A stretch of DNA of 35,023 nucleotides, taken from Macrostomum lignano. Its lineage: Eukaryota. The DNA lies in contig NIVC01004787.1 in NCBI GenBank assembly GCA_002269645.1, forward strand, positions 1 to 35,023, given 5' to 3'. Under the pieces are notes generated by a model that did not search any database, was not told the origin of the DNA, and was given only the letters and a program-made list of their open reading frames with translations. Every line of letters starts with the position of its first letter. The first letter of the stretch is position 1. Made by a program: the position numbers and the translations under genes. Shown in pieces: positions 4,466 through 31,916 of this stretch.

Positions 4466-5180
4466 TCTAGTCTCACATCTGGCATCTAGTCTCACATCTG
4501 GCATCTAGTCTCACATCTGGCATCTAGTCTCACATCTGGCATCTAGTCTCACATCTGGCATCTAGTCTCACATCTGGCATCTAGTCTCACATCTGGCATC
4601 TAGTCTCACATCTGGCATCTAGTCTCACATATGGCATCTAGTCTCACATCTGGCATCTAGTCTCACATCTGGCATCTAGTCTCACATCTGGCATCTAGTC
4701 TCACATCTGGCATCTAGTCTCACATCTGGCATCTAGTCTCACATCTGGCATCTAGTCTCACATCTAGCATCTAGTTTCACATTGGGAATCTATTCTCACA
4801 TCTGGCATCTAGTCTCACATCAGGCATCTAGTTTTACATTTGACATCTAGTCTCACATTTGACATCTAGTCTCAAATCTGGCATCTAGTCTCAAATCTGG
4901 CATCTAGTCTCCCATTGGGAATCTAGTCTCAAATCTGGCATCTAGTCTCAAATCTGGCATCTAGTCTCAAATCTGGCATCTAGTCTCAAATCTGGCATCT
5001 AGTCTCAAATCTGGCATCTAGTCTCAAATCTGGCATCTAGTCTCAAATCTGGCATCTAGTCTCAAATCTGGCATCTAGTCTCAAATCTGGCATCTAGTCT
5101 CAAATCTGGCATCTAGTCTCACATCTGGCATCTAGTCTCAAATCTGGCATCTAGTCTCACATCTAGCATCTAGTCTCACA
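4466..5180. repeat. Minisatellite, 19 bp unit TAGTCTCA(C/A)ATCTGGCATC, ~37 copies
   Basis: Direct inspection; C variant in the 5' half, A variant in the 3' half. Confidence 0.96.
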
Positions 5181-5867
5181 GCTGTTCTGTTCCACACTAA
5201 ACTTGCATGATCTATCTCTTATTTTGCACAGACAAGGTTTTTTGCAGGCTTTCAATTCGATACACATCGAATGTGTAACCAAAATCACGGCGAACACCCC
5301 TGTCCACCCCGCTCTCCTGACTCTCAGCATGCAAAGAACTATAGAAAGATTTTCTTCCTGCTAAAATAATTTCGAATTTCTCTGGTTTCGAATAGCTGCA
5401 TGTACACACTTTCTACGTATTTTTTCTCTCGGCGGTGAGAAAAAGAGAGAGAGAGAGCATGTGAATTCGCACATGCGCTGCGCAGTGTGACATGATTTCC
5501 ATGCTGTCCTTTTCTGTACCCCTCTCGCCCCCCTCTCTCTCAGGCATGTACATTCGAGGCCCCTCAGCAACTGCGGTTTAATCTAACGAAAAAAATGCAG
5601 AGTCAGAGAGACAGACACAAACTGACTTCATTAGTGCCGACATGCGGTTGGTTTGGGCCCCGTTTGTCAGGACGACTTTATTGTTACCAAATTAGTAAAT
5701 TTATTTTAACGAGCTGAATAGAGAATGAAGCGTCATAAATCACTCGGCAACCTGCGTCGTTCGCTGTCTACCTTGTACTTGAGAATCTCGGGAACAAATA
5801 ATAGTCTGGTCTTCGACAGAGACTTCTGCAAGAAGTATTTCAGTAAGTCTTTGTACTGATCCTGGGA

Positions 5868-9510: not shown

Positions 9511-9770
9511 AGGGTCCGCTATCTGCTGAAGTCGCCGAGTCCATCGCGCACCGCTGGTCGAGTCTTCTCAACGACAGCTCGCTAACGGTGGTAACGGTGC
9601 AGCTGGCCAAGTTCAAGCACCATCCCGGCCTCGGCATCAGCCTGGAAGGCACGGTGGACGTGCTGGAGACCGGAGCGGAGGTCCGGCCGCATCACTACAT
9701 CCGGGCCATCCAGCCCGACGGCCCTGTGGCGGCTGACGGAACCTTGAGGCCGCATGACGAGCTGCTGGAG
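9511..9770 (+). CDS. MPDZ: MPDZ/PATJ exon: N-terminal part of a PDZ domain equivalent to human MPDZ PDZ4
   Basis: Translates to GPLSAEVAESIAHRWSSLLNDSSLTVVTVQLAKFKHHPGLGISLEGTVDVLETGAEVRPHHYIRAIQPDGPVAADGTLRPHDELLE. This parallels MPDZ PDZ4 as I recall it (..VSKFSENSGLGISLE..HHFIRSVLPEGPV..GDELLE). Acceptor aaccag|, donor gag|gtgaga (phase 0). Confidence 0.9.
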
Positions 9771-9821
9771 GTGAGAAACTATGGGGGGATAAGCAGTTCT
9801 TCTCTTGAAGTAACAGCCCTC

Positions 9822-10931
9822 TTCTTCTCAGCCTCTGTCACTATCTCCCTCTCAGCCTCTGTCACTGTCTCCCTCTCAGCCTCTGTCAGTATCTCCCTCT
9901 AACCCTCTGTCACTATCTCCCTCTAACCCTCTGTCACTAGTCTCCCTCTAACCCTCTGTCACTATCTCCCTCTAACCCTCTGTCACTATCTCCCTCTCAG
10001 CCTCTGTCACTAGTCTCCCTCTAACCCTCTGTCACTATCTCCCTCTAACCCTCTGTCACTATCTCCCTCTCAGCCTCTGTCACTATCTCCCTCTCAGCCT
10101 CTGTCACTATCTCCCTCTCAGCCTCTGTCACTATCTCCCTCTCAGCCTCTGTCACTATCTCCCTCTCAGCCTCTGTCACTATCTCCCTCTCAGCCTTCTG
10201 TCACTATCTCCCTCTCAGCCTCTGTCACTATCTCCCTCTCAGCCTCTGTCACTATCTCCCTCTAACCCTCTGTCACTATCTCCCTCTAACCCTCTGTCAC
10301 TATCTCCCTCTAACCCTCTGTCACTATCTCCCTCTAACCCTCTGTCACTATCTCCCTCTAACCCTCTGTCACTATCTCCCTCTAACCCTCTGTCACTATC
10401 TCCCTCTCAGCCTCTCTCACTATCTCCCTCTCAGCCTCTCTCACTATCTCCCTCTCAGCCTCTCTCACTATCTCCCTCTAACCCTCTGTCACTATCTCCC
10501 TCTCAGCCTCTCTCCCTATCTCCCTCTCAGCCTCTCTCACTATCTCCCTCTAACCCTCTGTCACTATCTCCCTCTCAGCCTCTCTCACTATCTCCCTCTC
10601 AACCTCTCTCACTATCTCCCTCTCAACCTCTCTCACTATCTCCCTCTCAACCTCTCTCACTATCTCCCTCTCAGCCTCTCTCACTATCTTCCTCTCAACC
10701 TCTCTCACTATCTCCCTCTCACCCTCTTTCACTATCTCCCTCTCACCCTCTTTCACTATCTCCCTCTCACCCTCTTTCACTATCTCCCTCTCAGCCTCTC
10801 TCACTATCTCCCTCTCACCCTCTTTCACTATCTCCCTCTCACCCTCTTTCACTATCTCCCTCTCACCCTCTTTCACTATCCCCCTCTCACCCTCTTTCAC
10901 TATCTCCCTCTCACCATCTTTCACTATCTCC
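9822..10931. repeat. Minisatellite, 24 bp unit CACTATCTCCCTCT(CAG/AAC/CAC)CCTCT(G/C/T)T, ~46 copies
   Basis: Direct inspection; variants occur in blocks. Confidence 0.95.
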
Positions 10932-11589
10932 TACTCAATCTCTTTTTTCATCTATGTTTCGATGATAGAAAAGTCAACGAACTGAACTGATACCAGACCT
11001 GGAATATAGCATCGAGCACTGAGCTTCATCCATGTTCTAGATCGCATCAGACGAGAACCATGAGAACTATCCCCTGTGGGAGAACGGAAACTTAGTTCCC
11101 AACATTTGTCAGCTGTTGGCTAATAGAATTTTCTTTTCCCCTTTCGTTCGATTATTTTTCGTACGTTCGGCCTTTTTTTCCTCTTCCAATGCTCGAACTT
11201 TGCGTGTGTCTCGAGTCTGCAACCAGAGCAATCAGAGCAACACACTGCCGTGCCCTCAGCCCCTCAGTCCATGCAGCTCTAGACTGCTGTTCCACCCGTA
11301 TCGGGTGTCTGACACCGGCAATTGAAATCTTTAACATTAAAAGAGAAAATAATTGAAAACTGTTGAAAAAATAACAATTCAAAACAGTATTACAAACTTT
11401 AAAGATTCACTCGCATAAATAGGGCTAGTATTTGTGTTCGCTTAGGCTTGATTGGCATCTTTAATTTAGTTTCAGAGAGACTTATTGGTTGGTACACTTT
11501 TTTCTAAACGGATCTTTCTCCACCGAGTTTCGTCTATGGTAAAAACCCACTTCACAGTCTACGCAAATAAGCTATACATGTACCTTTAC

Positions 11590-12052
<463 letters not shown>

Positions 12053-13201
12053 AGAATTGCCTAGATGAAAGGCGAGATATTCTGAATTTGAACATGGTGT
12101 TCTTAAAGACCTAAAATTCGGCATAGTCGGAAAACCTGTCTATGGTAAAATTTGCACGAACAGACAGCAGACGAGCAGCGTACGTTTTCTACATGTAATA
12201 AATTTGTCCATAAAGAGGCGAATATGCAGTACATATAGCTTGTAGTAGGAAGATAGCAACGATATTTGGAGCTTGTCAAATTTTGAACTCGATAATCGCA
12301 AGATTCTCCATATAAGTCAATTAAAATTTTGATCATTTTTGTTCGGGATTAACTACAAAACAGGGCTTGATTGTTTATCTTTCAAAATCGAGGTGAAGTC
12401 TCGATTCCTAGAAATTAAAAAAATAAAAACCCACCTATCCGGAAGCGATCCTTGAAATCTCCAGGGTCTGAAACAAGCTAATTTGGTCAAATTTCTCCAA
12501 ATCCATTTTAATCCTTTTTGTTTTGATTTGCTGATCCCATTTGATTAGCGCAGCTCACGCTTTCCACGAAAATAATCTTTTCAAAAAATTTAACGAATTT
12601 TTTTTCAAAACGTGTTTTTCTTAATTGAACAATCCTTAGTTGAATCATTTGAAATGTGAATTTAAAATTTTTTAAATGGTATTTACTATTGAGAATATTT
12701 ATTTATTTAATTCAGTCACTAAGTAGAGCCAAACGTCAAACAGTTTATTCAGTAAAGGGAACTAAAACATGATTTTCAGCAGAGTTGAGAGCACCTTTTC
12801 TACTACTACTGCTTAAGTAGGCATCACAACTTGAAAATATCGGAATTGCATGAAAATCAAGAAAACAGATTATTTTTAAGTAGGTACTTTTAAAAGGAAA
12901 ATTCACGATATTTACTCCTGCAATTATCTTAGCAAATACCGCAGTCTCCGATCTCAAACACAACCTCAAATTACCACATACCAAAACTGGACAAAACCAA
13001 TACCAAAAGAAGCAAATGACGTACGGATCAAGAAATCAGAGAGGGATAGAAATCAATTTCTGTTGATTAATTGACAAGTTTAGTAGAGAAAGATTACTGC
13101 CTTTTAAAACTACTGGTAGGACTCTGAAACTGGAAGACGTTCATGTATGATTATTATAATCTGCAGCTTTAGCGCAGCTTACTGCTTGTTTGACGGTTAA
13201 A

Positions 13202-16200
13202 TCACCTTGGAAACCGTCGAGCCTCAACCAGTTTGACCCGGTCGTAGCCCAGTAGGCCGCGCAGCAGCTTCAATTCCTTCTGAGTGGGCTGCTGGTAGAG
13301 CAGAAAATCGTCGCCGTGAACAGAGTAGGGAATCTCGATGAACCGCGCCAGACCAACGTGAAGCGCCACAGTCAGCAGCTTTGTTGTCAGCATCGGGTGC
13401 AGCAGAGCTGCGTCCGAGCTGGTGTCCAGCTGCCGCGGAGCGCCGCCAGCAGCCTGCAGATGATGGTAGGTCCGTCGTTGAGCCAGACAGTCCAGCGTGC
13501 GCCGCTGGCGTTCCAGCTCCTGCATTGTGGCATCGTCGGGCGTCGCGCTAGACGGCGCGTTGGCCAACGAATTCGCCAGAAGGCGCAGCTCGCGCGAGTC
13601 CCACAGGCAGCAGCGCGTGTCGACCGTTAGTCGGACGGCGATGTCCGGTCGACGATCGTGGGGGATCCGCTGCCTGACGTGGAACAGCTCGGGCTGGAGG
13701 GACCAGCTCAAGTCCAGCTGCATCTGCTTGTCACTCCAGCTGTTCAGCAGCTTCAACTCCGCAGGCCGTTGGCCGCAGCGCAATAGCAAGTTGCATCGTT
13801 GGCCACTGTTAGTAGCAAGTCGAGTGACGTGGGATCGCAATGTTTTGCCTTTTAAAGATCTAAGCAGCCTTTTATCTGCTGCTCTGCTTTCTTTCTGGAT
13901 CTCCAGCTGCTCGGGAAGCAGTTGCCAGCAGACCGAGGCGCCTTGGATTCCGGCTGCCACGCCTTCGAGCTTCACGTAGCTGTACTGGCTGAACAGCTCG
14001 GCTTCACTCAGCTTTGCCGCCTCAATCAACCAGCGCATTCGGGTCTCAAGGAAGCGTGAAAGAACTTCTCGTTGTCTGACAATCTCCCAAAATCGCGGCA
14101 GTCGATACTTGCAACACTTTTTTCCTCTCCTCTCCGAGAGAGTTTTTAGCCGTCGCAGCTGAGCTGAGCGGACACTGTTCTCGCCAGATATTTTTGACTT
14201 TCGAGCGAACTTCAGCTTGTAGAGAGCCTGCCGGCGGACTGAACGCATTCGCTCCTGTCGCTTGTCCACCGTTTTCTCCGTTGTTGAATCCCGCTGTTGA
14301 ATGTCCGTTGCTTTGGCTGCTGGTTTTGGAACTTTGCCATTTTTTGGCGGCTGTTTCTTCTCCCGACGGCACATCATGTCGAGTTTCCGCTCAAACTTCT
14401 TAACGATCTCAAGTCTTATCGTATCCATTTTCTTGGAGAATTCGCTAACCAGTCGGTTCTGTTGCATCTGCTCGCTAGAAAGAATTGATGGATGCCTGTA
14501 AACCCGTGTGACATCCTGCTTCTTCATCTCTTTGACTAAAGCCTCTTCGCTATCGTCTGGATGGGGACTTGGTAGGACAGTGACTTCAACGTACTTCTTC
14601 ATCATGTTAGAGATGCGTTTAACATTGGTTTCCGCTGTGTCCACAGTGCGCTGCACCTCGTCGCGGGCCTTTTTAGCGCGTACCGCAAAAGACTCAGTTT
14701 TCTTAGGTTGCACCTCCGCTGGCTTGGGCGTTTCCGCTGGCTGAGATTGCTTCTTTTTCAGTTTTGCCTTCAATCGTTCCTCAGTTGTCATTGGAGTGGA
14801 GTTCATCTTCGGTTTCGTTTGAGCTACAGTCGGTGTACTCTGTGCTGTCTGCGCTTTAGGTGACTTCTTAGCCTGCGGCGAACTATTCTTGATGCCTGCG
14901 TAAAGCGCTTGAAGCAAATTGTACGCCTTTGAGCCCACGATTTTCAAGTCTTGGCTGTCGTATTTCGCGCCCTTTGTGAGTAGCAAATTAGCCAGCGGTA
15001 TTCTTTCACCTGGCGCGTCGTCTGACATGATTGCGAGGTTTAGCACTGTGAAGCCTTCAGGTGATCTCCTGTTCACGTCGGCACCCTTGGCAATCAATTC
15101 CATGGCGATGCTCTGGCTACCCTGCTTGCCGGCAATCATCAGTGGGGTGAAATTGTCACCGCGTCTGGGGATGTCCAGCTTAGCCGTCGGCGGTGTGAGC
15201 ACGTTGACCATAGCCAAGTCTTTCTGCCTGCAGGCAATATGAAGCGGAGTTTCTCCATCGCTTGAGAAAAATTCGAGATTTGGATTCGTTGCCTGAAGAA
15301 TAAATTTCATTGCTTCTAGGCTTCTCCTCTCGGCAGCAATGTGCAGCAAGGTGTACTGCTTTCCTTCGTAATCGAATAATGAGTCCATATTAAAATGCTC
15401 CAGAGTGTTCCGCGTTGTTAAAACTTTTAACAAATTGGTTCGATTTAGCAGAACACTGTAGTACAAAGCGTTGCGACCTTGTGAGTCCATTTGAAATGGA
15501 TCCGCATTGGAGTCGAGTAGAAGCTCGAGCAGAACTGTGCCATTCAGCGTAGCAGCGATCGAGCAGGGCGTCTTGCATTCAGACTTACCCTCCGGCATCA
15601 AGTTCGGATTAGCTTTATGATTAAGCAACACTGTGGAAATATTTAAGCTAGCGGTTTGTACTGCCAAACTTAGAGCGCTGAAGCCTTTCTTGCTAAGCAT
15701 GTTGACGCTCGCGGAAGCTTTCAGAAGGCGTTCAACAATTCCAAGACTACCGCTACGCGTAGCGGCCATCAGAGGTGTCACGCCTTTGGCGTCAGCGCAG
15801 TCCGGTTGAAACCCTCGATCGAGGAGGAACGAGACGATGTCTTCAGTGCGGTTCTCGCAAGCAACGCAGAGTAGCGGCGTCTCTGAGCAGCTATTGGCCT
15901 TTTCGAGGCTTGCACCTGAATCTAGCAACAATTTCACCAAGTTCAGGTTCTTGGACATGATTGCCAGACGAATGGGCATCTCAGCCGCCAAGTTTGGCTC
16001 GTTGATAAGCCTCACCAAAGCTGGAAGCTCCGTCAAGTAGCGAACGATAGACTCGCGGCCAAGACGCGCCGCAGCGTGCAGCACCGTATTGCCAGCAGAG
16101 TCCTTGCCGTCGGGCTGCAGAACTTTGTGGTGCACCAAAATCAAGTGCTGCAGCATTGACAGCTCGGCGTACTCAGCGACGTGGAACAAAGCTGTCCGGC

Positions 16201-17071
16201 CCTTGTCGTCGGCAGCGTCGATTGCAACACCCTGCTTCATCATTTCAGCGACGAATGTCTTTTGATCCCATGGCTTAGCCGCCTCGTTATTAGATGGGCC
16301 AAAGTCGACGGGGTCGCTGTCAGCGGTTGAGCAGCTAATCTGGGGTCGTTGGCAAGCCAGCATGATGACTGTCCGCCCGTCTTCAGTGACAGCCTTAACA
16401 TCGGCGCCCCACTTTATTAGCCTGGCCGCCATGGAAAACTTTCCAGCTTCTACAGCGTGCAGCAGTGGAGTATAGCCTGCCGAATCCCGATCGTTAATTA
16501 TCTCCGCAAGCCTGCTCTCGCTGATGTACTTGTAAATTGGCCAGGCTTTGCCAGCTCTAGCCAGCATCATGAGCACAGTGCGGCCATGCCGATCCCTGAC
16601 AGCGAGATCGGCTCCGGTTTTCTCCACCAGCAGGTGCTCAACTATGGCCACGTGACCACATTCGGCCGCAACAAACAGAGCGGTCTTACCGTCCCGATCA
16701 ACTGGAACCTGACTGGCGCCGGCTCCCAGGAGACACCGGGCGAGCTCTAGACGACCCTCGGCTAGCGCGTGCATTAGAGCTGTTCGACCCTTGGCGTCTT
16801 GAATGTCCAGCTTGGCGCCATAGTTAACCAGGAGTCGCAATAGCGGCTGGTGACCGTTCTTAGCCGCCAAGATCAACGGCGTTTGGCCATCCAAGTTTAG
16901 ATCGTTGATGTTGGCCCCGTTCTTGACAAGACATCGGACTACGTCCAAATGGCCATTGGACGAAGCTGCTAGTATCGGACTTAAGCCGTCTCTCTTAGAC
17001 TTCTCGTTGACTACTCTGTACTTGGTCAGCTCAAAGCTTCGCAGATCAGCTGGAGTCAGCCGCCTGTCCAT
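13202..17071 (-). CDS. Nested antisense gene with an intronless CDS: ~1289 aa ankyrin-repeat protein (~19 ANK repeats, basic linker, unassigned C-terminal region)
   Basis: Uninterrupted ORF open from 17104; first ATG at 17071 in context ttaacaATGg; TGA at 13202. Repeated G-x-T-[PA]-L-[HM]-x-A..G..V..LL..GA motifs over roughly residues 40-725 (~16990-14930). Confidence 0.88.
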   Translation of the reverse strand: MDRRLTPADLRSFELTKYRVVNEKSKRDGLSPILAASSNGHLDVVRCLVKNGANINDLNLDGQTPLILAAKNGHQPLLRLLVNYGAKLDIQDAKGRTALMHALAEGRLELARCLLGAGASQVPVDRDGKTALFVAAECGHVAIVEHLLVEKTGADLAVRDRHGRTVLMMLARAGKAWPIYKYISESRLAEIINDRDSAGYTPLLHAVEAGKFSMAARLIKWGADVKAVTEDGRTVIMLACQRPQISCSTADSDPVDFGPSNNEAAKPWDQKTFVAEMMKQGVAIDAADDKGRTALFHVAEYAELSMLQHLILVHHKVLQPDGKDSAGNTVLHAAARLGRESIVRYLTELPALVRLINEPNLAAEMPIRLAIMSKNLNLVKLLLDSGASLEKANSCSETPLLCVACENRTEDIVSFLLDRGFQPDCADAKGVTPLMAATRSGSLGIVERLLKASASVNMLSKKGFSALSLAVQTASLNISTVLLNHKANPNLMPEGKSECKTPCSIAATLNGTVLLELLLDSNADPFQMDSQGRNALYYSVLLNRTNLLKVLTTRNTLEHFNMDSLFDYEGKQYTLLHIAAERRSLEAMKFILQATNPNLEFFSSDGETPLHIACRQKDLAMVNVLTPPTAKLDIPRRGDNFTPLMIAGKQGSQSIAMELIAKGADVNRRSPEGFTVLNLAIMSDDAPGERIPLANLLLTKGAKYDSQDLKIVGSKAYNLLQALYAGIKNSSPQAKKSPKAQTAQSTPTVAQTKPKMNSTPMTTEERLKAKLKKKQSQPAETPKPAEVQPKKTESFAVRAKKARDEVQRTVDTAETNVKRISNMMKKYVEVTVLPSPHPDDSEEALVKEMKKQDVTRVYRHPSILSSEQMQQNRLVSEFSKKMDTIRLEIVKKFERKLDMMCRREKKQPPKNGKVPKPAAKATDIQQRDSTTEKTVDKRQERMRSVRRQALYKLKFARKSKISGENSVRSAQLRRLKTLSERRGKKCCKYRLPRFWEIVRQREVLSRFLETRMRWLIEAAKLSEAELFSQYSYVKLEGVAAGIQGASVCWQLLPEQLEIQKESRAADKRLLRSLKGKTLRSHVTRLATNSGQRCNLLLRCGQRPAELKLLNSWSDKQMQLDLSWSLQPELFHVRQRIPHDRRPDIAVRLTVDTRCCLWDSRELRLLANSLANAPSSATPDDATMQELERQRRTLDCLAQRRTYHHLQAAGGAPRQLDTSSDAALLHPMLTTKLLTVALHVGLARFIEIPYSVHGDDFLLYQQPTQKELKLLRGLLGYDRVKLVEARRFPR

Positions 17072-18014
17072 TGTTAAGACTCTGTTGACGGCTTTTAGTC
17101 CCAACTAGCAACGAAGCTTGCAATAAAGCTGGCTCCAGCTTTCAAAAACCGTTTTGCAACAACGCTGTGGGTTTAGTAGGAACCAACATTATAAAGCATG
17201 CAGCCAGGGTTTCCACGGAAAAGCCTTTTCAATCTCAAAGCATGCGCGGCACGACCGCGAATAAACCAAGGGCCGGCCCTAGCCTGATAGTGATAGTACT
17301 CAGTCCGTGTACTGTACGCCCCAACACACGCTGGGGTTGTCGCAGTGTACACACCGCTTGAACGCGCCTAAACGTACGAAAGCGCTAATCTAGATTCAGA
17401 AAGACTGTCTTCTTTAATAACAAAATGCAAAATAAAGCTGAAACTCGACTCAACGCTTTCGCAAAAACCATTGCCTGCCTTCTTTTATATGAAGTGGAGG
17501 TTCATGTTTCAGCCGCCTTTGATACCAGACTAGAAGGGCTAGAGCAAGTTTAAACTCGATTTAGGCAAAAGGCTTACTAGCTTACTGTGTGTACTGGCCC
17601 TAATGCCCTTCCTCTCTTTCCCGTGTGTGTCAAGAAACTTGCTCTAGCAGGCAGGAACAGGGGGAATGCGCTGCTAATTCAGCTATATTTTCTTCTTAAC
17701 CCTCGCCTCTCCTCCTTTAGCCTTTCCATTCTTCTCTCTCTCAAGGGAGTGATAGCGGAAGAGAGAGGAGAGGGAATGGGGGGGTGTTTTGGGGGGGGGG
17801 GTTGCCTTTCAGTGTACGAGCGTAAAAACTGGGGAGAGGGGGGGGGTTGGGGCATTGTACAGTCCAGCTGCGTTTATTTTTATCTGACCATCGTTTGACC
17901 CTACTGCTAGTAGCCAAGCAAGAACTCTTTCGACATTCGATGCAAGTCGAGTCGATGTTAAGTGACTTTAATAAAATAAGTTTTGATTTCCATTTATCCC
18001 ATCTCCTTCGCCAG

Positions 18015-18758
18015 GTGAATGGCAAAAAGCTTTACGGCTTGAATCATCTCGAGGTGGTTGAGATTCTAAAAAACTTGCCGAAATATGTTCGAATCGTGTG
18101 CGCAAGGCCAGTGCAGAACCGTCTGCAGCAGGAGGACGGAGACGTGGCGGCAGCTTGCAGAGACGATGCCGACAGTCTCGACATCGACCAGATGGACGAC
18201 GACGATTTGATGACAACTCGGAGCCGGACGACTCGAGAGTCGCAGCCCGAGGCAGACTTAAGCGCCGCAGACGGGAACGCCAACACTGCGACGCTGCCTT
18301 CAAGAGGCGGCAGCGGCAGCGGGAACAACAAGAGTCAATCATTCGACGATTTTTCCAACACCGGCTACTGGTCGAATATTCCGACAGTGGTGGAGCTGGA
18401 AAAGACACCCGCTGGCCTGGGCTTCAGCGTGTTGGACTATCAAGATCCGCTGAGCGCCGATGAGACGGTGATCATCATACGCAGTCTGGTGCCGAACGGA
18501 GCAGCGCACAGGGACGGCCGACTTCTGCCTGGCGATCGTCTGCTGTTCGTGAACGACACCAACTTGGAACGGGCCAGCCTGGAGGAGACGGTTCGCTGCT
18601 TGAAATCCGCGCCCCGCGGTCGCATTGCCATCGGGGTGGCCAAGCCCCGACCGTTGGCGTCGGCATCGGCGGAGCGCAAGACCAGCATCGTGGACAATCG
18701 GCATCTGCCTGCGTCGAGCGGGCCGCGGCAGAGGCGGCAGCAGCAATGGCTTAAGACG
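18015..18758 (+). CDS. MPDZ: MPDZ/PATJ exon: end of PDZ4-equivalent, linker, complete PDZ5-equivalent
   Basis: Acceptor ccttcgccag|; starts VNGKKLYGLNHLEVVEILKNLPKYVRIVCAR, continuing DELLE|VNG. Contains VELEKTPAGLGFSVLDYQDPLSADETVIIIRSLVPNGAAHRDGRLLPGDRLLFVNDTNLERASLEETVRCLKSAPRGRIAIGVAKP, very close to MPDZ PDZ5. Donor acg|gtaagt (phase 0). Confidence 0.93.
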
Positions 18759-19193
18759 GTAAGTCTTCTCATGGGAGAAACAATATTCCCAATTATTTTC
18801 TTTGCTCCAATTTAGCCGGATGCCTATCGCTCGAAGCTTTGTTCACTGAATCCTGAATATTGTTCACGGAAAGGAATATTATAATTAATCCTACTTCCCA
18901 GCGAAAGTTCGCAGGTTTCTGATTTTAGCTCGTAAATCAGCTATACGTATTTCTTTGTACTCGAATTTTTGGAAGGATGGAAGAACTTCATGCGTCACAG
19001 CGCCGATCAGGTTAAAGTTAAGCGTGTTGTTTCATATTGACTGCGAGATACGAAGCTTTTTTGCAGTAGCTCGTGTACTTTCCCAGCACGAATCTGACGG
19101 AAATTTGACAAAATTGACAACTTCTTTACCTTAGAAAACATGGCAATCAAAGCAAAAAAAACTTTGAATCCCAATTGCCTGGTTTGGCTGCAG

Positions 19194-19928
19194 TCAAACC
19201 TGTCAACGCCTCAGCTGTCGCAGCATCAGCAACAGACTGCAGTCAAGCACCGGCCAATTCAGATCAGCAGCTCCTCCGTGTCCTCTCGACTGGACAGCAT
19301 CGAAGAGGATTTCGCTGGCACCGACAGCTGCCTGCGAGAGCACGCAAGAGCTCTGCGGCTCGACCTGACTAACAGCATCGACCCCGACTCTTGTCAGCGA
19401 GGCTCGAAATTTTCCAGCGCAGGCACTCGATCAAGAGCCTCTGTTGACTCCTCCGCAGCTACCGAGGAAGAACTGCGCCACTCGGAGACTCCCAGTTCGG
19501 AAGTGTTGAATTGCTATAGTGCACAGATTGTGCAGCAAGCAATGTCCACTGTGCTGGCACAGCTGGCTTCGGAATACAAGCCCAGGCCTCATCCCAGCAC
19601 CACCAGTACGAGGAGCTCGGTCGCCTCCACCCTGTCCCCTTTCGACACTGCCGATCCGCTGTCCATTGTTGAGTGCCATGACGACGAAGCCAACTCTGCT
19701 CATCGAATCGTTGCCTCGGCAATTGAAGCGGCTCGCAGACAACTGCTCCAGCAAGATCGACACATGCCGGACGGGAAAACTGTTCTCACCTACGCTTCTT
19801 CCAAAACATCGGCGTCTTCCTCTTCATTAAATAGTTTGGCGTCATCCTCGTCATCCGGAGACATGCTGATCGAGCTGGAGCAAGTCGAAGACTGCGGCTC
19901 CGACACCGATGCGCTGTTCAACCACCAG
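19194..19928 (+). CDS. MPDZ: MPDZ/PATJ exon: Ser-rich, probably disordered linker between PDZ5 and PDZ6
   Basis: Lies within open frame 19140-20096; acceptor ttggctgcag| (phase 0), donor cag|gtgaga (phase 0); coding-like composition. The 5' boundary is less certain. Confidence 0.75.
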
Positions 19929-20214
19929 GTGAGACAGAGCAGCTCCCACGAAGAGACGCACCCTTCCGCTCGACGCGTCGTCAATGTCTGTCGTGTTGTG
20001 GTACCTGTCCTTTTTAGTTATGCAGCTAATAGTTATAATAAAAGACCCTGCTTGAAGGCTTCTTTCTGTTCTAACAGTAGGTTAACACTTACCTAACTGC
20101 ATGTCGTCGTTAGTTGAGTATTTTTTTTGTGTCGTTAATTATGATTTTTTTTTGTATTTTCTCTGTGTTAGATTTTACACTTTGCTGTAAGTTCAATGCG
20201 TACTTTTACACCAG

Positions 20215-20274
20215 ATCGACGTACTTGACGCGGATTTATACACAGCTTTCAGCTACCAGCGATCTACTCTGGAG
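20215..20274 (+). CDS. MPDZ: Candidate 60-nt symmetric (phase 0-0) MPDZ exon IDVLDADLYTAFSYQRSTLE
   Basis: Pyrimidine-rich acceptor ending caccag|, donor gag|gtaacc, open frame, length a multiple of 3, joins in frame between ..LFNHQ and ELLDAE.. Confidence 0.55.
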
Positions 20275-20794
20275 GTAACCTTACCAACATAAATCACAGA
20301 TGTAGCATCGCATGTGCACATTGAATAAATTCTTTAGGAGCTATTTGTCAATAATTGAGCATGATGTTGGTGAAATCAACGACCATATATCCCTGTCACA
20401 GTTGAGAGTTGGACTGATCGGTAATCGAGATCAATACCCAGCGAGGTGAATGGGTCATGGTAGTTTGAGAAGCTTGACAATTTTTTATCCAAAGCAAAAC
20501 TGCTTACAAAATTTCTGATACTTCAGAGCAGTTTGATCCTGTCAGCTTCTACTATTCATGTAGCTCTAACAAGTGCATTGAGTAGAACCTGAGAACCCGT
20601 TTTTGCGCTTCTCGATTGAATATTATAGTTACTCAGCAGCAGCTACATACACTGTAGTCACGCGGCACAAAACTGTCACTGGTGACGTGTTGAGGCCGGT
20701 TTGCGATAGACTAGTAGCTCCGCAGTTGGAATATTGCGCAAACGTATTTTAAAAATGGTCTTTAACAACTTTAAACGGATTTAGCAGCAAAGGC

Positions 20795-21030
20795 CAAGGG
20801 CTTTAGCACCAGGGGATTAAGCACCAGGGGCTTTAGCACCAGGGGATTTAGCACTAGGGGCTTTAGCACCAGGGGATTTAAGCACCAGGGGCTTTAGCAC
20901 CAGTTTAGCACCAGGGGCTTTAGCTTTAGCACCAGGGGCTTTAGCACCAGGGGCTTTATTTTAGCACAGTGCACCAGGGGCAACCAGGGGCTTAGCTTTA
21001 GCACCAGGGGCTTTAGCACCAGAGCTTTAG
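20795..21030. repeat. Minisatellite, 15-16 bp unit CTTTAGCACCAGGGG
   Basis: Direct inspection. Confidence 0.92.
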
Positions 21031-21073
21031 CCAGCTTGCAACAGGGGCTGTTTCCAGGTCTCGTCGTCCACAG

Positions 21074-21202
21074 GAGCTGCTCGATGCAGAAGCGGAAATC
21101 GACGACGAAGAGGACGAATTGGTGCTGATGCGACCGCCGCGACAGGTGGCCTTCGGCGGTGCCACGTCGATCAGCTACTTCGGTGCATCTACTCCTCCGC
21201 AG
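21074..21202 (+). CDS. MPDZ: MPDZ/PATJ acidic linker exon (ELLDAEAEIDDEEDELVLMRPPRQVAFGGATSISYFGASTPPQ)
   Basis: Acceptor gtccacag|, donor cag|gttcgt, phase 0-0, 129 nt. Confidence 0.72.
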
Positions 21203-21351
21203 GTTCGTGCTGTGAGTTGGCCACGTAGTTTGAGTACAGGGTTTTGCTATGCGCCACTTTTTATTAAATACGGGGTGAAGCAAGCAGCCTACTTAGTTTC
21301 AGACTAACCTCTGACAATTCCGCTTAACTCTGCTTAAAATCAACACCGCAG

Positions 21352-21641
21352 GTGTCTCAACCGATGCAGCTGCAGTTGCCGCAGTCAATGGAGCGCTGCC
21401 TTCATATCAGACCTCGTCCTGGCGACACCCTCGAACTCGGCCTCGTAGTTGAGTCAGTGGACTCTGGCGTCAACGGGTGCATCATCCGCAGAGTCCTTGA
21501 GGGCGGCCTCGCCCACTCCGAGGGCAGCCTGCAACCGTGCGATTTTGTGACGGCCGTCAACTCGGAGTCTCTGCGGCGCCTGACAACGTCCGAGGCGAGA
21601 GAGCGACTTCGATGCGCGGGCGCACTTGGCCGAGATTTGTT
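21352..21641 (+). CDS. MPDZ: MPDZ/PATJ exon: PDZ6-equivalent domain
   Basis: Acceptor caccgcag|. MERCLHIRPRPGDTLELGLVVESVDSGVNGCIIRRVLEGGLAHSEGSLQPCDFVTAVNSESLRRLTTSEARERLR aligns by eye to MPDZ PDZ6. Donor tt|gtgaga (phase 2). Confidence 0.85.
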
Positions 21642-21863
21642 GTGAGACTCTTTGAATCTTTGATAGAGCGCTTCTTCAGAGTCGAGAAGGAAGTGCTGAA
21701 TTAGCGAACATGGCTTTTTACCATTGGCTCTCGTGCAAGTTGACGAGCAATAAAATGCGCTGTTACGTCATCCCGTCTTCCCGGAGTTGATAGCGCACAG
21801 ATTTAATACTTCAAGTAGTTGATACAAAATCGTTTGTTTCCTCCATCACTTAATTCACTCCAG

Positions 21864-21980
21864 CATCCGATACTACTCAGCGGCAGACATATCTCGACAC
21901 CTGACATCGTTCAAATCGCACCAATCTGAGTCGCAGAGCTCAGCGGAGCACGGGCTGCATAGTCGCTACGAGTATGCTAT
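21864..21980 (+). CDS. MPDZ: MPDZ/PATJ exon: last strand of PDZ6 plus linker (FIRYYSAADISRHL..RYEYA)
   Basis: Acceptor cactccag|, phase 2-2, donor at|gtgagt. The spliced RDL-FIRYY matches the MPDZ PDI-KITYV position. Confidence 0.8.
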
Positions 21981-22224
21981 GTGAGTCATCTTCACGTATT
22001 ATTCCTTGTTGATGACGTTGGCAACTATTTCTAATTACATGTAATCGAATTCAGTAACATATTCGTAGAATTTGGCTCTGTTACCTGTTTGACTGTAAGA
22101 CGGTAAATTCCACCTTTAGGACAGGTAAATCCACCTGTAAAACGAGTAGCTTAAGTCACAAGCTGGGAGATACTAACAACTGGTAGATACCAAGAAAATT
22201 TCAATCGCCCAACGCAATCTTCAG

Positions 22225-22690
22225 CGTCCACTATTCGGACGAAGATCAGCGTAGCGGCTCAATGTCACCTCAGCCCACCAAGCCAGCGAGGACCAACGGA
22301 GCAGTCGACAGCGAGTCGATCATCTATCTAGACGAGGACGAGCGCGCCCTGGCCGAGGCGGCGGCAGAACAGGTCCCAACTGAAGCGGAAGTGCCAACAG
22401 CCGACGAAGAGCCCGCAGCGACGCCAGCGCAGACGCTGCCGCAGGCACGCGAGAAGTCGTTGTCGCTGGATGGCTCTCCGGCGAACGCCAACGCCAGCAG
22501 CTGGAGCGAGCCGCGGCTGGTCAGACTGCGCCGGGATGCCAACCGCAGTCTCGGGGTCAGCATTGTGGGCGGCCGAGTCAACGGCCACGACCTGCAGCAG
22601 GGCATCAGCGGAGTCTTCATCAAGCAGGTGGCCGAGGCTGAGTCCAATAGGCGAGACGGCGTGCTCAGGACTGGCGATAGGATTTTGGCG
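22225..22690 (+). CDS. MPDZ: MPDZ/PATJ exon: linker plus N-terminal part of PDZ7-equivalent
   Basis: Acceptor tcttcag| (phase 2). WSEPRLVRLRRDANRSLGVSIVGGRVNG..GVFIKQV..GVLRTGDRILA resembles MPDZ PDZ7 (WNQPRRVELWREPSKSLGISIVGGR). Donor gcg|gtgagg (phase 0). Confidence 0.88.
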
Positions 22691-22719
22691 GTGAGGCTTA
22701 CTAATAAAGCAATGGTGCC

Positions 22720-22888
22720 GTCCTGACATCCTGACCTCCTGACATTCTGCTATCCTGACATCCTGACATCCTGATATCCTGACATCCTGCCATCCTGCCA
22801 TCCTGCCATCCTGACATCCTGACATCCTGACATCCTGACATCCTGCCATCCTGACATCCTGACATCCTGACATCCTGACATCCTGATA
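22720..22888 (+). repeat. Octamer array (CCTGACAT/CCTGCCAT)n
   Basis: Direct inspection; reverse complement of the array at 28636-29183. Confidence 0.93.
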
Positions 22889-23006
22889 CATCAAACAATC
22901 GCTGTCTCTGCATTAAAATATTGCTTTACTTGCAGTAATCGAATATTACACACAACCTATTCTAGAATCAATAAATGAAGATCAATAACTTATTCATTAC
23001 GCCCAG

Positions 23007-23117
23007 GTATGCGGCCAGGACCTGACGCACGCAACTCACGATGAAGCTGTCAATTTAATTAGAAACGCGCCGTCTCCAGTTGAATTCTGCATTCAATCTC
23101 TGCTGAACCCTTCGTGT
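23007..23117 (+). CDS. MPDZ: MPDZ/PATJ exon: C-terminal part of PDZ7-equivalent (VCGQDLTHATHDEAVNLIRNAPSPVEFCIQSLLNPSC)
   Basis: Acceptor gcccag|, donor tgt|gtaagt, phase 0-0; matches MPDZ [33 protein letters not shown]. Confidence 0.88.
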
Positions 23118-23394: not shown

Positions 23395-23736
23395 ATCATA
23401 TCATAATATCATAATAATATCAACAATAATATCATAGTAATACTTGATTACACCTGCCCTAATGGTCAAATGTGCAACCGACAGCTCAGCCGCAGCTATT
23501 GCGCGTTGCATCTGAAGGCTGCGTATGGCTGTTCAGTCCAAAGACTGGAGGGGGGTCCGCACACACACCCTCAATTACCCCAGCTAATGCTGGCACCCAT
23601 TTTACAGCTGGGTGAACTGAAGCAATGCAGATATGTGTCTTGCTCAAGGGCACAAATTATTCCAGTTGGAACGGGAATCGAACCCCTGACCTTTCAGTCA
23701 TGAGCCCGATGCTCTAACCACTAGACCACAACCCCC
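23395..23736 (-). mobile_element. tRNA-derived SINE with a CORE(MIR)-like central domain
   Basis: Minus strand: GGGGTTG-TGGTCTAGTGG (A box, 23718-23728) ..CTCATGA.. GGTTCGATTCC (B box, 23674-23684). Then TGTGCCCTTGAGCAAGACAC..TGCTTCAGTTCACCCAGCTGTAAATGGG, similar to the MIR CORE consensus, then a (TATTATGA)-like tail near 23395-23440. Confidence 0.8.
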
Positions 23737-24828
23737 ACTAGGCTACAACCCCCACTAGGCTACAACCCCCCACTAGGATACAACCCCCACTAGGCTACAA
23801 CCCCCCACTAGGCTACAACCCCCCACTAGGCTACAACCCCCACTAGGCTACAATCCCCCACTAGGCTACAACCCCCACTAGGCTACAATCCCCCACTAGG
23901 CTACAACCCCCACTAGGATACAACCCCCACTAGGCTACAACCCCCCACTAGGCTACAACCCCCACTAGGCTACAACCCCCCCACTAGGATACAACCCCCA
24001 CTAGGCTACAACCCCCACTAGGCTACAACCCCCACTAGGCTACAACCCCCCACTAGGCTACAACCTCCCCACTAGGCTACAACCCCCCACTAGGCTACAA
24101 CCTCCCCACTAGGCTACAACCCCCACTAGGGTAAACCCCCACTAGGCTACAACCCTCCCCACTAGGCTACAACCTCCCCACTAGGCTACAACCCCCACTA
24201 GGCTACAACCTCCCACTAGGCTACAACCTCCCCACTAGGCTACAACCCCCACTAGGCTACAACCACTAGGCTACAACCCCCACTAGGCTACAACCTCCCC
24301 ACTAGGCTACAACCCCCACTAGGCTACAACCCCCACTAGGCTACAACCTCCCCACTAGGCTACAACCCCCACTAGGCTACAACCCCCACTAGGCTACAAC
24401 CTCCCCACTAGGCTACAACCTCCCCACTAGGCTACAACCCCCACTAGGCTACAACCTCCCCACTAGGCTACAACCTCCCCACTAGGCTACAACCCCCACT
24501 AGGCTACAACCTCCCCACTAGGCTACAACCTCCCCACTAGGCTACAACCCCCACTAGGCTACAACCTCCCCACTAGGCTACAACCTCCCCACTAGGCTAC
24601 AACCTCCCCACTAGGCTACAACCTCCCCACTAGGCTACAACCTCCCCACTAGGCTACAACCCCACTAGGCTACAACCTCCCCACTAGGCTACAACCTCCC
24701 CACTAGGCTACAACCTCCCCACTAGGCTACAACCTCCCCACTAGGCTACAACCTCCCCACTAGGCTACAACCCCCACTAGGCTACAACCTCCCCACTAGG
24801 CTACAACCTCCCCACTAGGCTACAACTT
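23718..24828. repeat. Minisatellite, 17-20 bp unit CCACTAGGCTACAAC(CT)CCC, ~60 copies, contiguous with the SINE 5' end
   Basis: Direct inspection; the unit length varies with the C-tract. Confidence 0.95.
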
Positions 24829-25375
24829 CTTTTCAACAAATTATTTTCTACAGGTTGAAAAAGTGTTTAAATCGAATCGAATAATTTGAATGCCAAAACT
24901 GCATATCGGTTTTTTGTTGAAATTTACCAGAGTTTTAATGTGCAATTAGTCATTAGCAATTAAGTGATTATTATATTATACACTTAATAAGGCAGTCTAT
25001 AACTATGACTATGAATCATCACTAAATATTAAAAGAACAATAAGAATTCAGTAATATGAAAATCAGCATTGTTAATCGCTATCGCTACTACTATCTTTTT
25101 CATTTAAAAAAAATTAAATCAAGGACTATGTGTTGCTTGTGATGGTAAGTTTCTAAGAACTCTTACGCATGCCTCTTTACGCATCTTGCCAATTTTCTGT
25201 TTTGAAAGCCGCGTGAATACTGTGCATAAAATGTAAATCATTTCTGATTTTTACCCGCCTTATTTATCAACAGAAATATTCTTATTTGAATTATATTATG
25301 GCACTTGCATGAACTATATACGATTTTCTTTGCCTTTCGATCGCTTTGGTTTGTGGTAACTGCAATCAGCACAAT

Positions 25376-27143
25376 GCTAGACAGGCAGTGTGTCTCATGT
25401 TAGACAGGCAGTGTGTCACATGTTAGACAGGCAGTGTGTCTCATGTTAGACAGGCAGTGTGTCTCATGTTAGACAGGCAGTGTGTCACATGTTAGACAGG
25501 CAGTGTGTCTTATGTTAGACAGGCAGTGTGTCTCATGTTAGACAGGCAGTGTGTCTCATGTTAGACAGGCAGTGTGTCTCATGTTAGACAGGCAGTGTGT
25601 CTCATGTTAGACAGGCAGTGTGTCACATGTTAGACAGGCAGTGTGTCTCATGTTAGACAGGCAGTGTGTCTCATGTTAGACAGGCAGTGTGTCTCATGTT
25701 AGACAGGCAGTGTGTCTCATGTTAGACAGGCAGTGTGTCTCATGTTAGACAGGCAGTGTGTCACATGTTAGACAGGCAGTGTGTCTCATGTTAGACAGGC
25801 AGTGTGTCTCATGTTAGACAGGCAGTGTGTCTCATGTTAGACAGGCAGTGTGTCTCATGTTAGACAGGCAGTGTGTCTCATGTTAGACAGGCAGTGTGTC
25901 TCATGTTAGACAGGCAGTGTGTCTCATGTTAGACAGGCAGTGTGTCTCATGTTAGACAGGCAATGTGTCTCATGTTAGACAGGCAGTGTGTCACATGTTA
26001 GACAGGCAGTGTGTCTCATGTTAGACAGGCAGTGTGTCTCATGTTAGACAGGCAGTGTGTCTCATGTTAGACAGGAAGTGTGTCTCATGTTAGACAGGCA
26101 GTGTGTCTCATGTTAGACAGGCAGTGTGTCTCATGTTAGACAGGCAGTGTGTCACATGTTAGACAGGCAGTGTGTCACATGTTAGACAGGCAGTGTGTCA
26201 CATGTTAGACAGGCAGTGTGTCTCATGTTAGACAGGCAGTGTGTCTCATGTTAGACAGGCAGTGTGTCTCATGTTAGACAGGCAGTGTGTCTCATGTTAG
26301 ACAGGCAGTGTGTCTCATGTTAGACAGGCAGTGTGTCTCATGTTAGACAGGCAGTGTGTCTCATGTTAGACAGACAGTGTGTCTCATGTTAGACAGGCAG
26401 TGTGTCTCATGTTAGACAGGCAGTGTGTCTCATGTTAGACAGGCAGTGTGTCTCATGTTAGACAGGCAGTGTGTCTCATGTTAGACAGGCAGTGTGTCAC
26501 ATGTTAGACAGGCAGTGTGTCACATGTTAGACAGGCAGTGTGTCACATGTTAGACAGGCAGTGTGTCTCATGTTAGACAGGCAGTGTGTCTCATGTTAGA
26601 CAGGCAGTGTGTCTCATGTTAGACAGGCAGTGTGTCTCATGTTAGACAGGCAGTGTGTCTCATGTTAGACAGGCAGTGTGTCTCATGTTAGACAGGCAGT
26701 GTGTCTCATGTTAGACAGGCAGTGTGTCTCATGTTAGACAGGCAGTGTGTCACATGTTAGACAGGCAGTGTGTCTCATGTTAGACAGGCAGTGTGTCTCA
26801 TGTTAGACAGGCAGTGTGTCTCATGTTAGACAGGCAGTGTGTCTCATGTTAGACAGGCAGTGTGTCTCATGTTAGACAGGCAGTGTGTCACATGTTAGAC
26901 AGGCAGTGTGTCTCATGTTAGACAGGCAGTGTGTCTCATGTTAGACAGGCAGTGTGTCTCATGTTAGACAGGCAGTGTGTCTCATGTTAGACAGGCAGTG
27001 TGTCTCATGTTAGACAGGCAGTGTGTCTCATGTTAGACAGGCAGTGTGTCTCATGTTAGACAGGCAGTGTGTCTCATGTTAGACAGTGTGTCTCATGTTA
27101 GACAGGCAGTGTGTCTCATGTTAGACAGGCAGTGTGTCACATG
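25376..27143. repeat. Minisatellite, 23 bp unit TAGACAGGCAGTGTGTC(T/A)CATGT, ~77 highly homogeneous copies
   Basis: Direct inspection; no spacers. Confidence 0.97.
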
Positions 27144-27584
27144 TCTGACTGCAATCGTACATAGAACTAGAGCAGAAATTCTTGCTTCAGGCTATCAATC
27201 ATTTATTAGAATAACCCATTGAGTACTGAGGCACTGGTAGATGCTTACATATGCTTCTATCTGGAAAAATGTGGGATTGCAACACACGCGTATTCATATA
27301 ATTCCAGTTTTTTCTATCGCTTATACTGATAGCCTAACTGAATATCTGTGTCGCATCCTGACTATAGAGCTGCGTACTTATATGAATTTTTATTACATTT
27401 TTGTCAAACTATTAATGCTTAAATCTTCTTTATTTTACCTGTCAACTATTTATTGAGCTTTTTGTGACGTCATGTAATTTAGCGACAGCTCACAATGTAC
27501 TTTTCTGTACCTTTTCGTGCACGTAAAGGAAATATTTAGGAAAAACCTCCAAAAACGCTACTTAACCATAGCTGACACCAAACA

Positions 27585-28405
27585 ACACCTAACCCCAACT
27601 GACACCCAACCCCAACTGACACCCAACCCTAACTGACACCCAACAGCAACTGACACCCAACCCCAACTGACACCCAACAGCAACTGACACCCAACCCCAA
27701 CTGGCACCCAACAGCAACTGACACCCAACCCCAACTGATACCCAACCCCAACTGACACTCAACAGCAACTGACACCCAACCCCAACTGATACCCAACCCT
27801 AACTGATACCCAACCCTAACTGACACCCAACCCCAACTGACACCCAACCCCAACTGACACCAACCCCAACTGACACCCAACAGCAACTGACACCCAACCC
27901 TAACTGACACCCAACAGCAACTGACACCCAACAGCAACTGACACCCAACAGCAACTGACACCCAACCCTAACTGACACCCAACCCCAATTGACACCCAAC
28001 CCCAACTGATACCCAACCCTAACTGACACCCAACCCCAACTGACACCCAACCCCAACTGACACCCAACAGCAACTGACACCCAACCCCAACTGACACCCA
28101 ACAGCAACTGACACCCAACCCCAACTGATACCCAACCCCAACTGACACTCAACAGCAACTGACACCCAACCCCAACTGATACCCAACCCTAACTGATACC
28201 CAACCCTAACTGACACCCAACCCCAACTGACACCCAACCCCAACTGACACCAACCCCAACTGACACCCAACAGCAACTGACACCCAACCCTAACTGACAC
28301 CCAACAGCAACTGACACCCAACAGCAACTGACACCCAACAGCAACTGACACCCAACCCTAACTGACACCCAACCCCAATTGACACCCAACCCTAACTGAC
28401 ACCCA
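27585..28405. repeat. Minisatellite, 17 bp unit AACTGACACCCAAC(CCC/AGC/CCT), with a 390-bp higher-order duplication
   Basis: Direct inspection; near-identical ORFs at 27629 and 28019 (offset 390). Confidence 0.95.
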
Positions 28406-28476
28406 ATAAACACAAACTGTCAAATCAACGCCAAAGACGTTAAGATAAACAAAAAATCAAACCCAATTTCTCTCAG

Positions 28477-28635: not shown

Positions 28636-29183
28636 GGCAGGATGTCAGGATGTCAGAATGTCAGGATGGCAGGATGTCAGAATGTCAGGATATGGAAGTA
28701 TGGCATATCAGGATGACATGTCAGGATGGCAGGGTGTCAAGATGGCAGGGTGTCAAGATGGTAGGGTGTAAAGATGGCAGGATGTCAGGATGACAGGGTG
28801 TCAGGATGCCAGGGTGTCCAGGATGCCAGGGTGTCAGGATGGCAGGATGTCCAGGATGTGTCAGGATGTCAGGATGTCAGGATGTCAGGATGTCAGGATG
28901 GCAGGATGTCAAGATGGCGAGGTGTCAAGATGGCAGGGTGTCAAGATGGCAGGGTGTAAAGATGGCAGGATGTCAGGATGACAGGGTGTCAGGATGACAG
29001 GGTGTCAGGATGCCAGGGTGTCAGGATGGCAGCTGGTGCCAGGATGTCAGGATGTCAGGATGTGAGGATGGAAGGGTGTCAGGATGGCAGGGTGTCAGGA
29101 TGGCAGGGTGTCAGGATGGCAGGGTGTCAGGATGTCAGGATGTCAGGATGTCAAGATGGCAGGATGGCAGGGTGTCAGGATGA
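28636..29183 (-). repeat. Octamer array (ATGTCAGG/ATGGCAGG/GTGTCAGG)n
   Basis: Direct inspection; same family as 22720-22888 in the opposite orientation. Confidence 0.93.
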
Positions 29184-30368: not shown

Positions 30369-30832
30369 TATTGTCTATGGCCAAGAGCAGTTTCCTGGAA
30401 GCGAATAGCAGTTCTCCCCTGGATCGGTTTAGTTGTATTAATCTGACCTGACAAGCAGCAGCCAATTGCGGTTGCTTACGGCAGATCATATTAATTCGCA
30501 GGTATAAAGATCTCATTAGTGTTTTCTGCTTCTAAAATTAGAAACAGTGTCTATCTATCTGCGCTAATGGACCAGGTGCTGATTGTTCGGAAGGGGGATT
30601 AATAAATATTTGGCTCGGTACAAATTGCCCGGCCCCAAAAAGGATGCACGTGAGGAGCGAGGCGAATAACTGGGCTTTAAGCACTCTGGTTGAGTCAGGG
30701 GGTTTCTAAGTGAACGCAATATCCACTGCCATTGTGCAGATATATAATTAATTAGTTATTTATGGAGATTAACTGTGCCAATAGGGAGGTGTAGGGAATG
30801 ACGTTGGGTGAGAGGCGGGAAAGAAACAAAAC

Positions 30833-31861: not shown

Positions 31862-31862
<1 letters not shown>

Positions 31863-31916
<54 letters not shown>

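Follow-up and report, generated by a model that had tools for sequence, protein, structure and literature searches.

How did a gene of 1,289 codons with an undivided coding sequence come to lie, on the opposite strand, inside an intron that cuts a PDZ domain of another gene in two? The question is raised by contig NIVC01004787.1 (assembly GCA_002269645.1) of the flatworm Macrostomum lignano, the whole of which, 35,023 nucleotides (nt) in length, forms the stretch analysed here and is called the window below. A host gene encoding several PDZ domains runs along the plus strand of the window, and a gene for an ankyrin-repeat (ANK) protein is located on the minus strand within one of its introns. 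The original prediction saw in this arrangement a lineage-specific insertion, brought about by retroposition, by a transposable element or by horizontal transfer. Most probably the ANK gene is instead an ordinary, vertically inherited, lineage-restricted coding gene of M. lignano, placed antisense inside one intron of an MPDZ/PATJ-like gene. The three proposed routes of insertion left no trace at the locus, and all of them are unsupported.

The ankyrin-repeat gene and its host intron

The minus strand carries an open reading frame (ORF) at 13202..17104 which extends through 1,300 codons from a TTG without interruption. Its first ATG, at 17071, stands in a good Kozak context (ACAATGG), and from there the coding sequence (CDS) comprises 3,870 nt including the stop and encodes a product of 1,289 amino acids (aa). 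This product is the annotated protein P0001, a hypothetical protein of the Mlig028949 family, and its 90% cluster contains M. lignano proteins only, named Mlig028949 g1, g2, g4 and g5. On the other strand, the host intron of the GT-AG type begins with a donor site at 9771 (GAG/GTGAGA, the slash marking the junction) and ends at 18014 with an acceptor that has a pyrimidine tract (...CTCCTTCGCCAG/GTG). The reading frame is preserved across the intron (...RPHDELLE/VNGKKLYGLNH...), and the joined host peptide scores as a PDZ domain which can be aligned over its full length with the solved MPDZ PDZ domain 4xh7_A (E=9e-18), the DELLEVNG motif being conserved. The interruption of a host PDZ domain at DELLE/VNG was predicted correctly, as was the presence of a single-exon ANK CDS lying antisense and wholly within that intron. 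The earlier wording "giant intronless" is right as to the absence of introns from the CDS and overstated as to the size of a protein of 1,289 aa. Both the whole CDS (13202-17071) and its polyadenylation signals (12698-12749) are contained in one host intron, as is characteristic of a nested gene. This intron measures 8,244 nt, while the other host introns in the window have about 0.3-1.2 kb. The features of the locus are as follows:

9588..9770, plus strand: part of a host exon with the N-terminal two thirds of the split PDZ domain (...GLGISLEG...DELLE), placed by the splice join, the PDZ score and the 4xh7_A alignment
9771..18014, plus strand: host intron with the whole ANK gene and two tandem arrays, placed by GT...AG and the frame-preserving join
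12698..12749, minus strand: cluster of polyadenylation signals, placed by motifs, with a predicted 3' untranslated region (UTR) of about 450-500 nt (12698-13201) in a flank that diverges 1.6% between copies of the locus
13202..17071, minus strand: complete single-exon ANK-repeat CDS, 1,289 aa, with stop TGA at 13202-13204, placed by the ORF, the annotation, a ratio of non-synonymous to synonymous divergence (dN/dS, omega) of 0.18 against a second copy, and the lack of insertions or deletions (indels)
17072..18014, minus strand: inferred 5' flank of the ANK gene (5' UTR and putative promoter), overlapping the 3' end of the host intron, with a TATA-like box at 17483-17489 and TTTCAG ending at 17438
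18015..18700 (3' end approximate), plus strand: host exon with the remainder of the PDZ domain (VNGKKLYG...), an acidic, Ser-rich spacer and a second complete PDZ domain, placed by the splice join and PDZ matches

Three further PDZ domains are encoded downstream of the intron-split one, of which one is also interrupted by an intron (ILAV/CGQD), so that at least four PDZ domains stand in a row in the part of the host gene that the window carries. Among solved structures the host domains matched 2d92_A (5.8e-24), 2ehr_A (3.6e-22) and 2fcf_A (7.3e-21), which belong to PATJ/InaD-like and MPDZ proteins; for three of the host domains the best or near-best match is MPDZ or PATJ, with DLG4 close behind for some. 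Tandem PDZ domains, each closest to those of MPDZ/PATJ, were thus found. Such a tandem of at least four is shared with the polarity scaffolds MPDZ (MUPP1) and PATJ (InaD-like), and the host appears to fit an MPDZ/PATJ-like gene as far as the fragment in the window allows, the L27 domain and the full PDZ count lying beyond what the window showed. This host gene (9588-23100, plus strand) is absent from the genes called on all five contigs that bear the locus, where the ANK gene alone is listed; it may have been filtered from the GenBank "coregenes" set or split across contigs. In antisense direction the GC-rich host exons also have long open frames, the longest of 194 aa.

Putative signals of a separate transcription unit are present on both sides of the CDS. 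Downstream, about 450-500 nt past the ANK stop, the polyadenylation signals AATAAA (12749), ATTAAA (12711) and AATAAA (12703) occur close together. Upstream, a TATA-like TATAAAA is situated at 17483-17489, 418 nt before the ATG, and is kept in a second copy of the locus. The gene would be transcribed from its own promoter within the 943 nt between the ATG and the host splice acceptor, with the conserved TATA-like box at -418, and termination would fall at the cluster of signals near 12700. Spliced-leader (SL) trans-splicing in M. lignano uses the acceptor motif [T/C]TNCAG (PMC8629364); none was found in the 60 nt before the ANK ATG, and the sole match in the 5' flank is the TTTCAG that ends at 17438. 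Neither an Rfam scan nor a tRNA scan of the window gave a match. The only sources of the GenBank models for this assembly were transcriptome assemblies, both genome-guided and de novo, from which non-coding transcripts and those overlapping repeats had been removed (PMC5730564), therefore the existence of a GenBank model for the ANK gene implies RNA evidence and the lack of a repeat annotation.

Copies of the locus and selection on the coding sequence

The sequenced DV1 line carries duplicated chromosomes, and 180 Mb of its assembly are found in blocks that are at least 95% identical (PMC5730564; see also PMC10468722). The locus studied here occurs on five contigs, namely the window and four others (L002-L005), and colinearity between the window and each of the latter extends over the ANK gene, the remaining intron sequence and the host exons. 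Two classes can be distinguished by their identity to the window, one of about 99-99.6% (L004 and L005) and one of about 96.4% (L002 and L003). The five represent a single locus in duplicated or allelic form and not transposed copies, and the two forms that are about 96% identical are either homeologs or diverged alleles. The nesting is common to all copies in the assembly and therefore predates the duplication or divergence of these two forms; an insertion, if there was any, is older than the duplication which gave rise to them.

These copies bear on the proposal that the ANK gene was brought into the intron by a transposable element, whether as cargo or as a gene since domesticated. Such an origin would suit a genome that is more than 50% repetitive, with 21% long terminal repeat (LTR) elements (PMC5730564), and a host intron full of tandem repeats. 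However, five of five copies occupy one syntenic locus and none is dispersed, neither LTR nor terminal inverted repeats bracket the ANK ORF, and none of the 10 largest flanking ORFs (0/10) contains a Pfam domain, let alone one of a transposable element protein. Moreover, transcripts that overlapped a repeat annotation had been left out of the GenBank gene set (PMC5730564). This part of the original prediction is largely refuted, and it is retained here as very improbable.

The comparison of the window with L002 is the most informative with regard to coding function. Within the 3,870-nt CDS the two differ by 102 substitutions and 0 indels; 64 of the substitutions are synonymous and 38 non-synonymous, which corresponds to a synonymous divergence (dS) of 0.072, a non-synonymous divergence (dN) of 0.013 and an omega of 0.18 (binomial p=1e-16). 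By codon position the differences number 18/15/69, that is, 68% of them fall on third positions. In the 943-nt 5' flank the two copies show 37 gapped positions, versus none in the CDS, and the host exons yield an omega of 0.17, similar to that of the ANK gene. The constraint extends to each part of the protein:

ANK half: omega 0.14, p = 4e-13
C-terminal half: omega 0.25, p = 2e-5
last 329 aa: omega 0.185, p = 0.002

Judging from this pattern, the ORF, including the tail that has no known relatives, is constrained coding sequence in both copies, and purifying selection acts along its entire extent. The same figures bear on the question of whether a gene exists here at all. One might suspect an ORF that arose by chance or is decaying, or else an artefact of annotation from unstranded reads of the host pre-mRNA, as strand errors did occur at this locus (see the chimeric model below). 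Nevertheless, an open frame of 1,300 codons with a Pfam ANK match at E=6e-90, its omega, the excess of third-position differences and the absence of any indel beside a gapped flank are not what such an artefact would leave; this reading is already refuted by the substitution pattern and is hardly credible.

Several other database models exist for the locus. The shorter ones, P0122, P0123 and P0124, are truncated by 1-3-nt indels in short runs or by the end of a contig; the classification of P0122 and P0123 as pseudogenes was considered and rejected, assembly indels in short runs being the probable cause. A longer model, P0125 (1,579 aa, UniRef A0A1I8IR35), could be taken as a sign of extra exons of the ANK gene. 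This was rejected as well, since the residues it adds come from host exons translated in antisense, at 19793-20017, 18443-18811, 18047-18334 and 9585-9827. P0125 is a strand-chimeric artefact in which the ANK ORF and these antisense stretches have been joined.

A separate remark is due on the flanks of the CDS. Between the copies, 12206-13201 and 17072-18014 diverge by 1.6% and 2.3% (substitutions), respectively, which is less than the divergence of the synonymous sites of the CDS (dS 0.072) and of a neighbouring host intron (4.3%). Such low divergence would be consistent with a UTR or promoter function, but the counts are small.

The protein, its relatives and the question of origin

In a Pfam search the 1,289-aa protein matched ANK families alone, with Ank_2 at E=6e-90 in 10 stretches and Ank at E=2.8e-70; the bit scores of 296 for Ank_2 (cut-off 27.3), 229 for Ank and 201 for Ank_4 place it in the Ank clan. 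About 19-20 diverged ANK repeats are present at aa 27-710 (15 recognised by a consensus probe and the rest by eye), and the array is interrupted by an acidic non-ANK insert at aa ~243-285. The pairwise identity among these repeats has a median of 31% and reaches at most 48%, which indicates that the repeats of the Mlig028949 protein are old. The array is followed by a basic linker at aa 711-960 (pI 10.3), rich in Lys, Pro, Thr and Gln, with KK/RR clusters at aa 891 and 902, which is probably disordered, and by a tail at aa 961-1289, which is Leu/Arg-rich, basic and mostly helical by prediction. Thus the protein consists of three parts:

14942..16993, minus strand: ankyrin-repeat array, aa 27-710 (Pfam Ank_2 E=6e-90; consensus probe; omega 0.14)
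14192..14941, minus strand: basic Lys/Pro/Thr/Gln-rich, probably disordered linker, aa 711-960 (composition; no Pfam match; omega about 0.33)
13205..14191, minus strand: orphan Leu/Arg-rich, mostly helical C-terminal region, aa 961-1289 (no homolog, Pfam or PDB match; omega 0.185, p=0.002)

The full-length protein found thousands of generic ANK matches, of 23-29% identity and confined to the repeat half, which are spread over protists, fungi, arthropods (insects), vertebrates, bacteria and metagenomic proteins. No protein outside M. lignano exceeded 29% identity in the full-length protein database search; in a 90%-clustered database the next-best match is 27% identical and covers the ANK repeats only. 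Also within the window, no similarity between the ANK gene and any other part was detected. The C-terminal 589 aa stand further apart: a phmmer scan of 1.84 billion (1.84e9) representative proteins returned the protein itself alone. This negative result is based on the exhaustive phmmer scan, as word-indexed subsequence searches missed even the protein itself and are uninformative. At aa 701-1289 no Pfam domain was found even at E<=10, a sequence search of the PDB with the tail yielded no match (best E-value 0.39), and neither 185,579 prokaryotic genomes nor IMG/VR nor the JGI metagenomes contained a relative of the tail.

Among the generic matches of 23-25% identity are the families of ANK1-3, ANKRD17/ANKHD1 and the PP6 regulatory subunits ANKRD28/44/52. 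Like the Mlig028949 protein, all of them have some 20 or more ANK repeats arrayed at the N-terminus, presumably as a protein-binding solenoid. Unlike canonical ankyrins and ANKRD17/ANKHD1, it has neither a ZU5-UPA-death module nor a KH domain, and its C-terminal 589 aa are unrelated to any of the families named. The supermodule ZU5-UPA-death, which in ANK1/2/3 follows 24 ANK repeats, did not appear in the Pfam search of aa 701-1289 at E<=10; likewise, the C-terminal SOCS box typical of the ASB proteins gave no SOCS_box match at E<=10. By its domain content the protein is a member of the ANK-repeat superfamily that belongs to no named family. The lineage-specificity which had been claimed for the gene holds for the C-terminal 589 aa, devoid of a detectable homolog, and agrees with the lack of matches above 29% identity outside M. 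lignano; the insertion mechanisms proposed along with it are not supported.

Long ANK arrays are common in Wolbachia and in giant viruses, and the combination of such an array with a variable, often orphan C-terminal region is a trait which their ANK effectors share with the present protein. Acquisition of such an effector from a bacterium, an endosymbiont or a large virus is a further reading, and bacterial and metagenomic proteins are among the generic matches. The best matches, however, have 24-29% identity, cover the repeats only and are taxonomically scattered with no signal of a donor, and the databases in which the tail found no relative were prokaryotic, viral and metagenomic as well as general. 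The codon usage resembles that of the host gene: GC content at third codon positions (GC3) is 0.61 in the ANK gene versus 0.70 in the host exons, relative synonymous codon usage (RSCU) correlates with r=0.71, and the observed-to-expected CpG ratio is 1.0 in both. In contrast to bacterial and viral ANK effectors, the gene combines this native codon usage with eukaryotic polyadenylation signals and Kozak context, lacks specific similarity to any of them and occupies a syntenic, duplicated nuclear locus. Horizontal transfer is accordingly regarded as scarcely probable, on a par with transposable element cargo.

There is somewhat more to be said for an old retrogene, that is, a processed mRNA of an intron-containing ANK gene that was reverse-transcribed into the intron of the PDZ gene, gained a promoter there and stayed functional. 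A CDS of 3.87 kb without an intron is conspicuous in a species whose genes have on average 4.9 introns of 1.1 kb (PMC5730564), and the intron which houses it is far longer than its neighbours. On the other hand, no A-rich tail follows the polyadenylation signals (the longest A run, of 8 nt, is at 12605, about 100 nt further), no target-site duplication was seen, the two flanks sharing no direct repeat of 11 nt or longer, and neither a parental paralog nor another carrier of the tail was found among the annotated and predicted proteins searched. Old retrogenes lose their poly(A) and target-site marks. For this reason the absence of retroposition marks is a weak test against an ancient event, and retroposition, which found no confirmation in a poly(A) remnant, a duplication or a parent in the protein databases, is considered improbable.

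Some observations speak against an ordinary gene kept by vertical descent. Three of the five copies of the locus have 1-3-nt indels in the CDS, and some of the indel-bearing copies could be real pseudogenised alleles. These indels, in L003, L004 and L005, are placed in short homopolymer or dinucleotide runs, and L005 (NIVC01001121.1; 8611-10167 and upstream) has 10 indels versus 5 substitutions in the CDS, because of which they are probably uncorrected errors of the long-read (PacBio) assembly. The comparison of loci covers the copies of M. lignano alone, and vertical inheritance beyond this species is inferred. Transcription of the ANK gene is read from the sequence and from the transcriptome-derived GenBank model; strand, transcription start site and poly(A) site are predicted. 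The name "Mlig028949" does not occur in the searchable full texts and supplements of M. lignano papers. An AlphaFold2 model of aa 941-1289 made without an alignment has a mean predicted local distance difference test score (pLDDT) of 36.5 and is unusable, and the function suggested for the protein is derived from domain type and composition alone, the tail being without a homolog.

Nesting, possible function and remaining features

Protein-coding genes on the opposite strand inside introns are common in animals (PMC3786989, PMC11694760), and in Drosophila about 6% of the genes are intronic (PMC3786989). The M. lignano pair resembles Drosophila 2mit inside timeless2 (PMC3786989) and mammalian host/nested pairs (PMC11694760) in that a whole gene with its own termination signals lies in one intron in opposite orientation. 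As in those pairs, host and guest are functionally unrelated and have a potential for interference (PMC3192792). It differs from them as a gene pair, which is known here from sequence, and the M. lignano host intron interrupts a PDZ domain. Transcriptional interference has been documented for nested pairs (PMC3192792, PMC11694760), and by analogy transcription converging with the host gene's could cause mutual interference or reciprocal regulation.

As for the protein, it may be a soluble scaffold whose solenoid of about 20 repeats would bind one partner protein or several. The disordered, basic linker, with KK/RR clusters resembling nuclear localisation signals, would serve as a flexible spacer, possibly one that targets the protein to the nucleus or contacts nucleic acid. 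The basic, helical, lineage-specific tail might provide the specific output by self-association or by recruitment of a second partner. A bolder version can also be formulated, in which the gene is an invention restricted to Macrostomum: an old ANK array would have become fused with new sequence of about 580 residues, basic, helical, possibly of de novo origin and now under purifying selection, and the expression of the gene would be coupled to the PATJ/MPDZ polarity gene by transcriptional interference, owing to a position that converges on the promoter-distal half of that gene. Only a slender chance is given to this whole. With the ordinary, vertically inherited gene preferred, Mlig028949 can be described as a real, constrained gene nested in a host gene that the public annotation of these contigs has not called, a result of little import beyond annotation. 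Its sole unusual trait is the C-terminal half, which is an orphan and yet constrained and offers a modest instance of taxonomic restriction in a protein region, in a flatworm for which transgenesis and RNA interference are available. The locus also illustrates that an intronless gene within an intron need carry no mark of retroposition or transfer.

The remainder of the window is dominated by tandem repeats, of which two arrays share the host intron with the ANK gene:

9826..10931, no strand: 24-nt minisatellite of 46 copies, just past the host donor site (tandem-repeat scan)
11590..12053, no strand: (CAGA)n microsatellite of 116 copies, in the host intron downstream of the ANK 3' end (tandem-repeat scan)

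In total about one third of the window is taken up by at least 18 distinct mini- and microsatellite arrays, with units of 4-33 nt in as many as 77 copies, most of this in PDZ-gene introns; examples are situated at 1104-2461, 4466-5184, 9826-10931, 23718-24826, 25374-27144, 27585-28406, 29581-30369 and 32924-33702. This load fits the simple and tandem-repeat content of the M. lignano genome, which is 15% (PMC5730564). The arrays give many long pseudo-ORFs on both strands of the window. At ~31805-32017 a trinucleotide run of CTG/GCT type produces, on both strands, poly-Leu, poly-Ala and poly-Ser frames that form part of ORFs of 150-166 aa. One 8-nt-based array (CAGGATGT-like, with "CQDVRMSG" pseudo-peptides) is found at ~22730-22925 on the minus strand and again, inverted and about 6 kb apart, at 28638-29182 on the plus strand, and one copy of it abuts a host PDZ exon.

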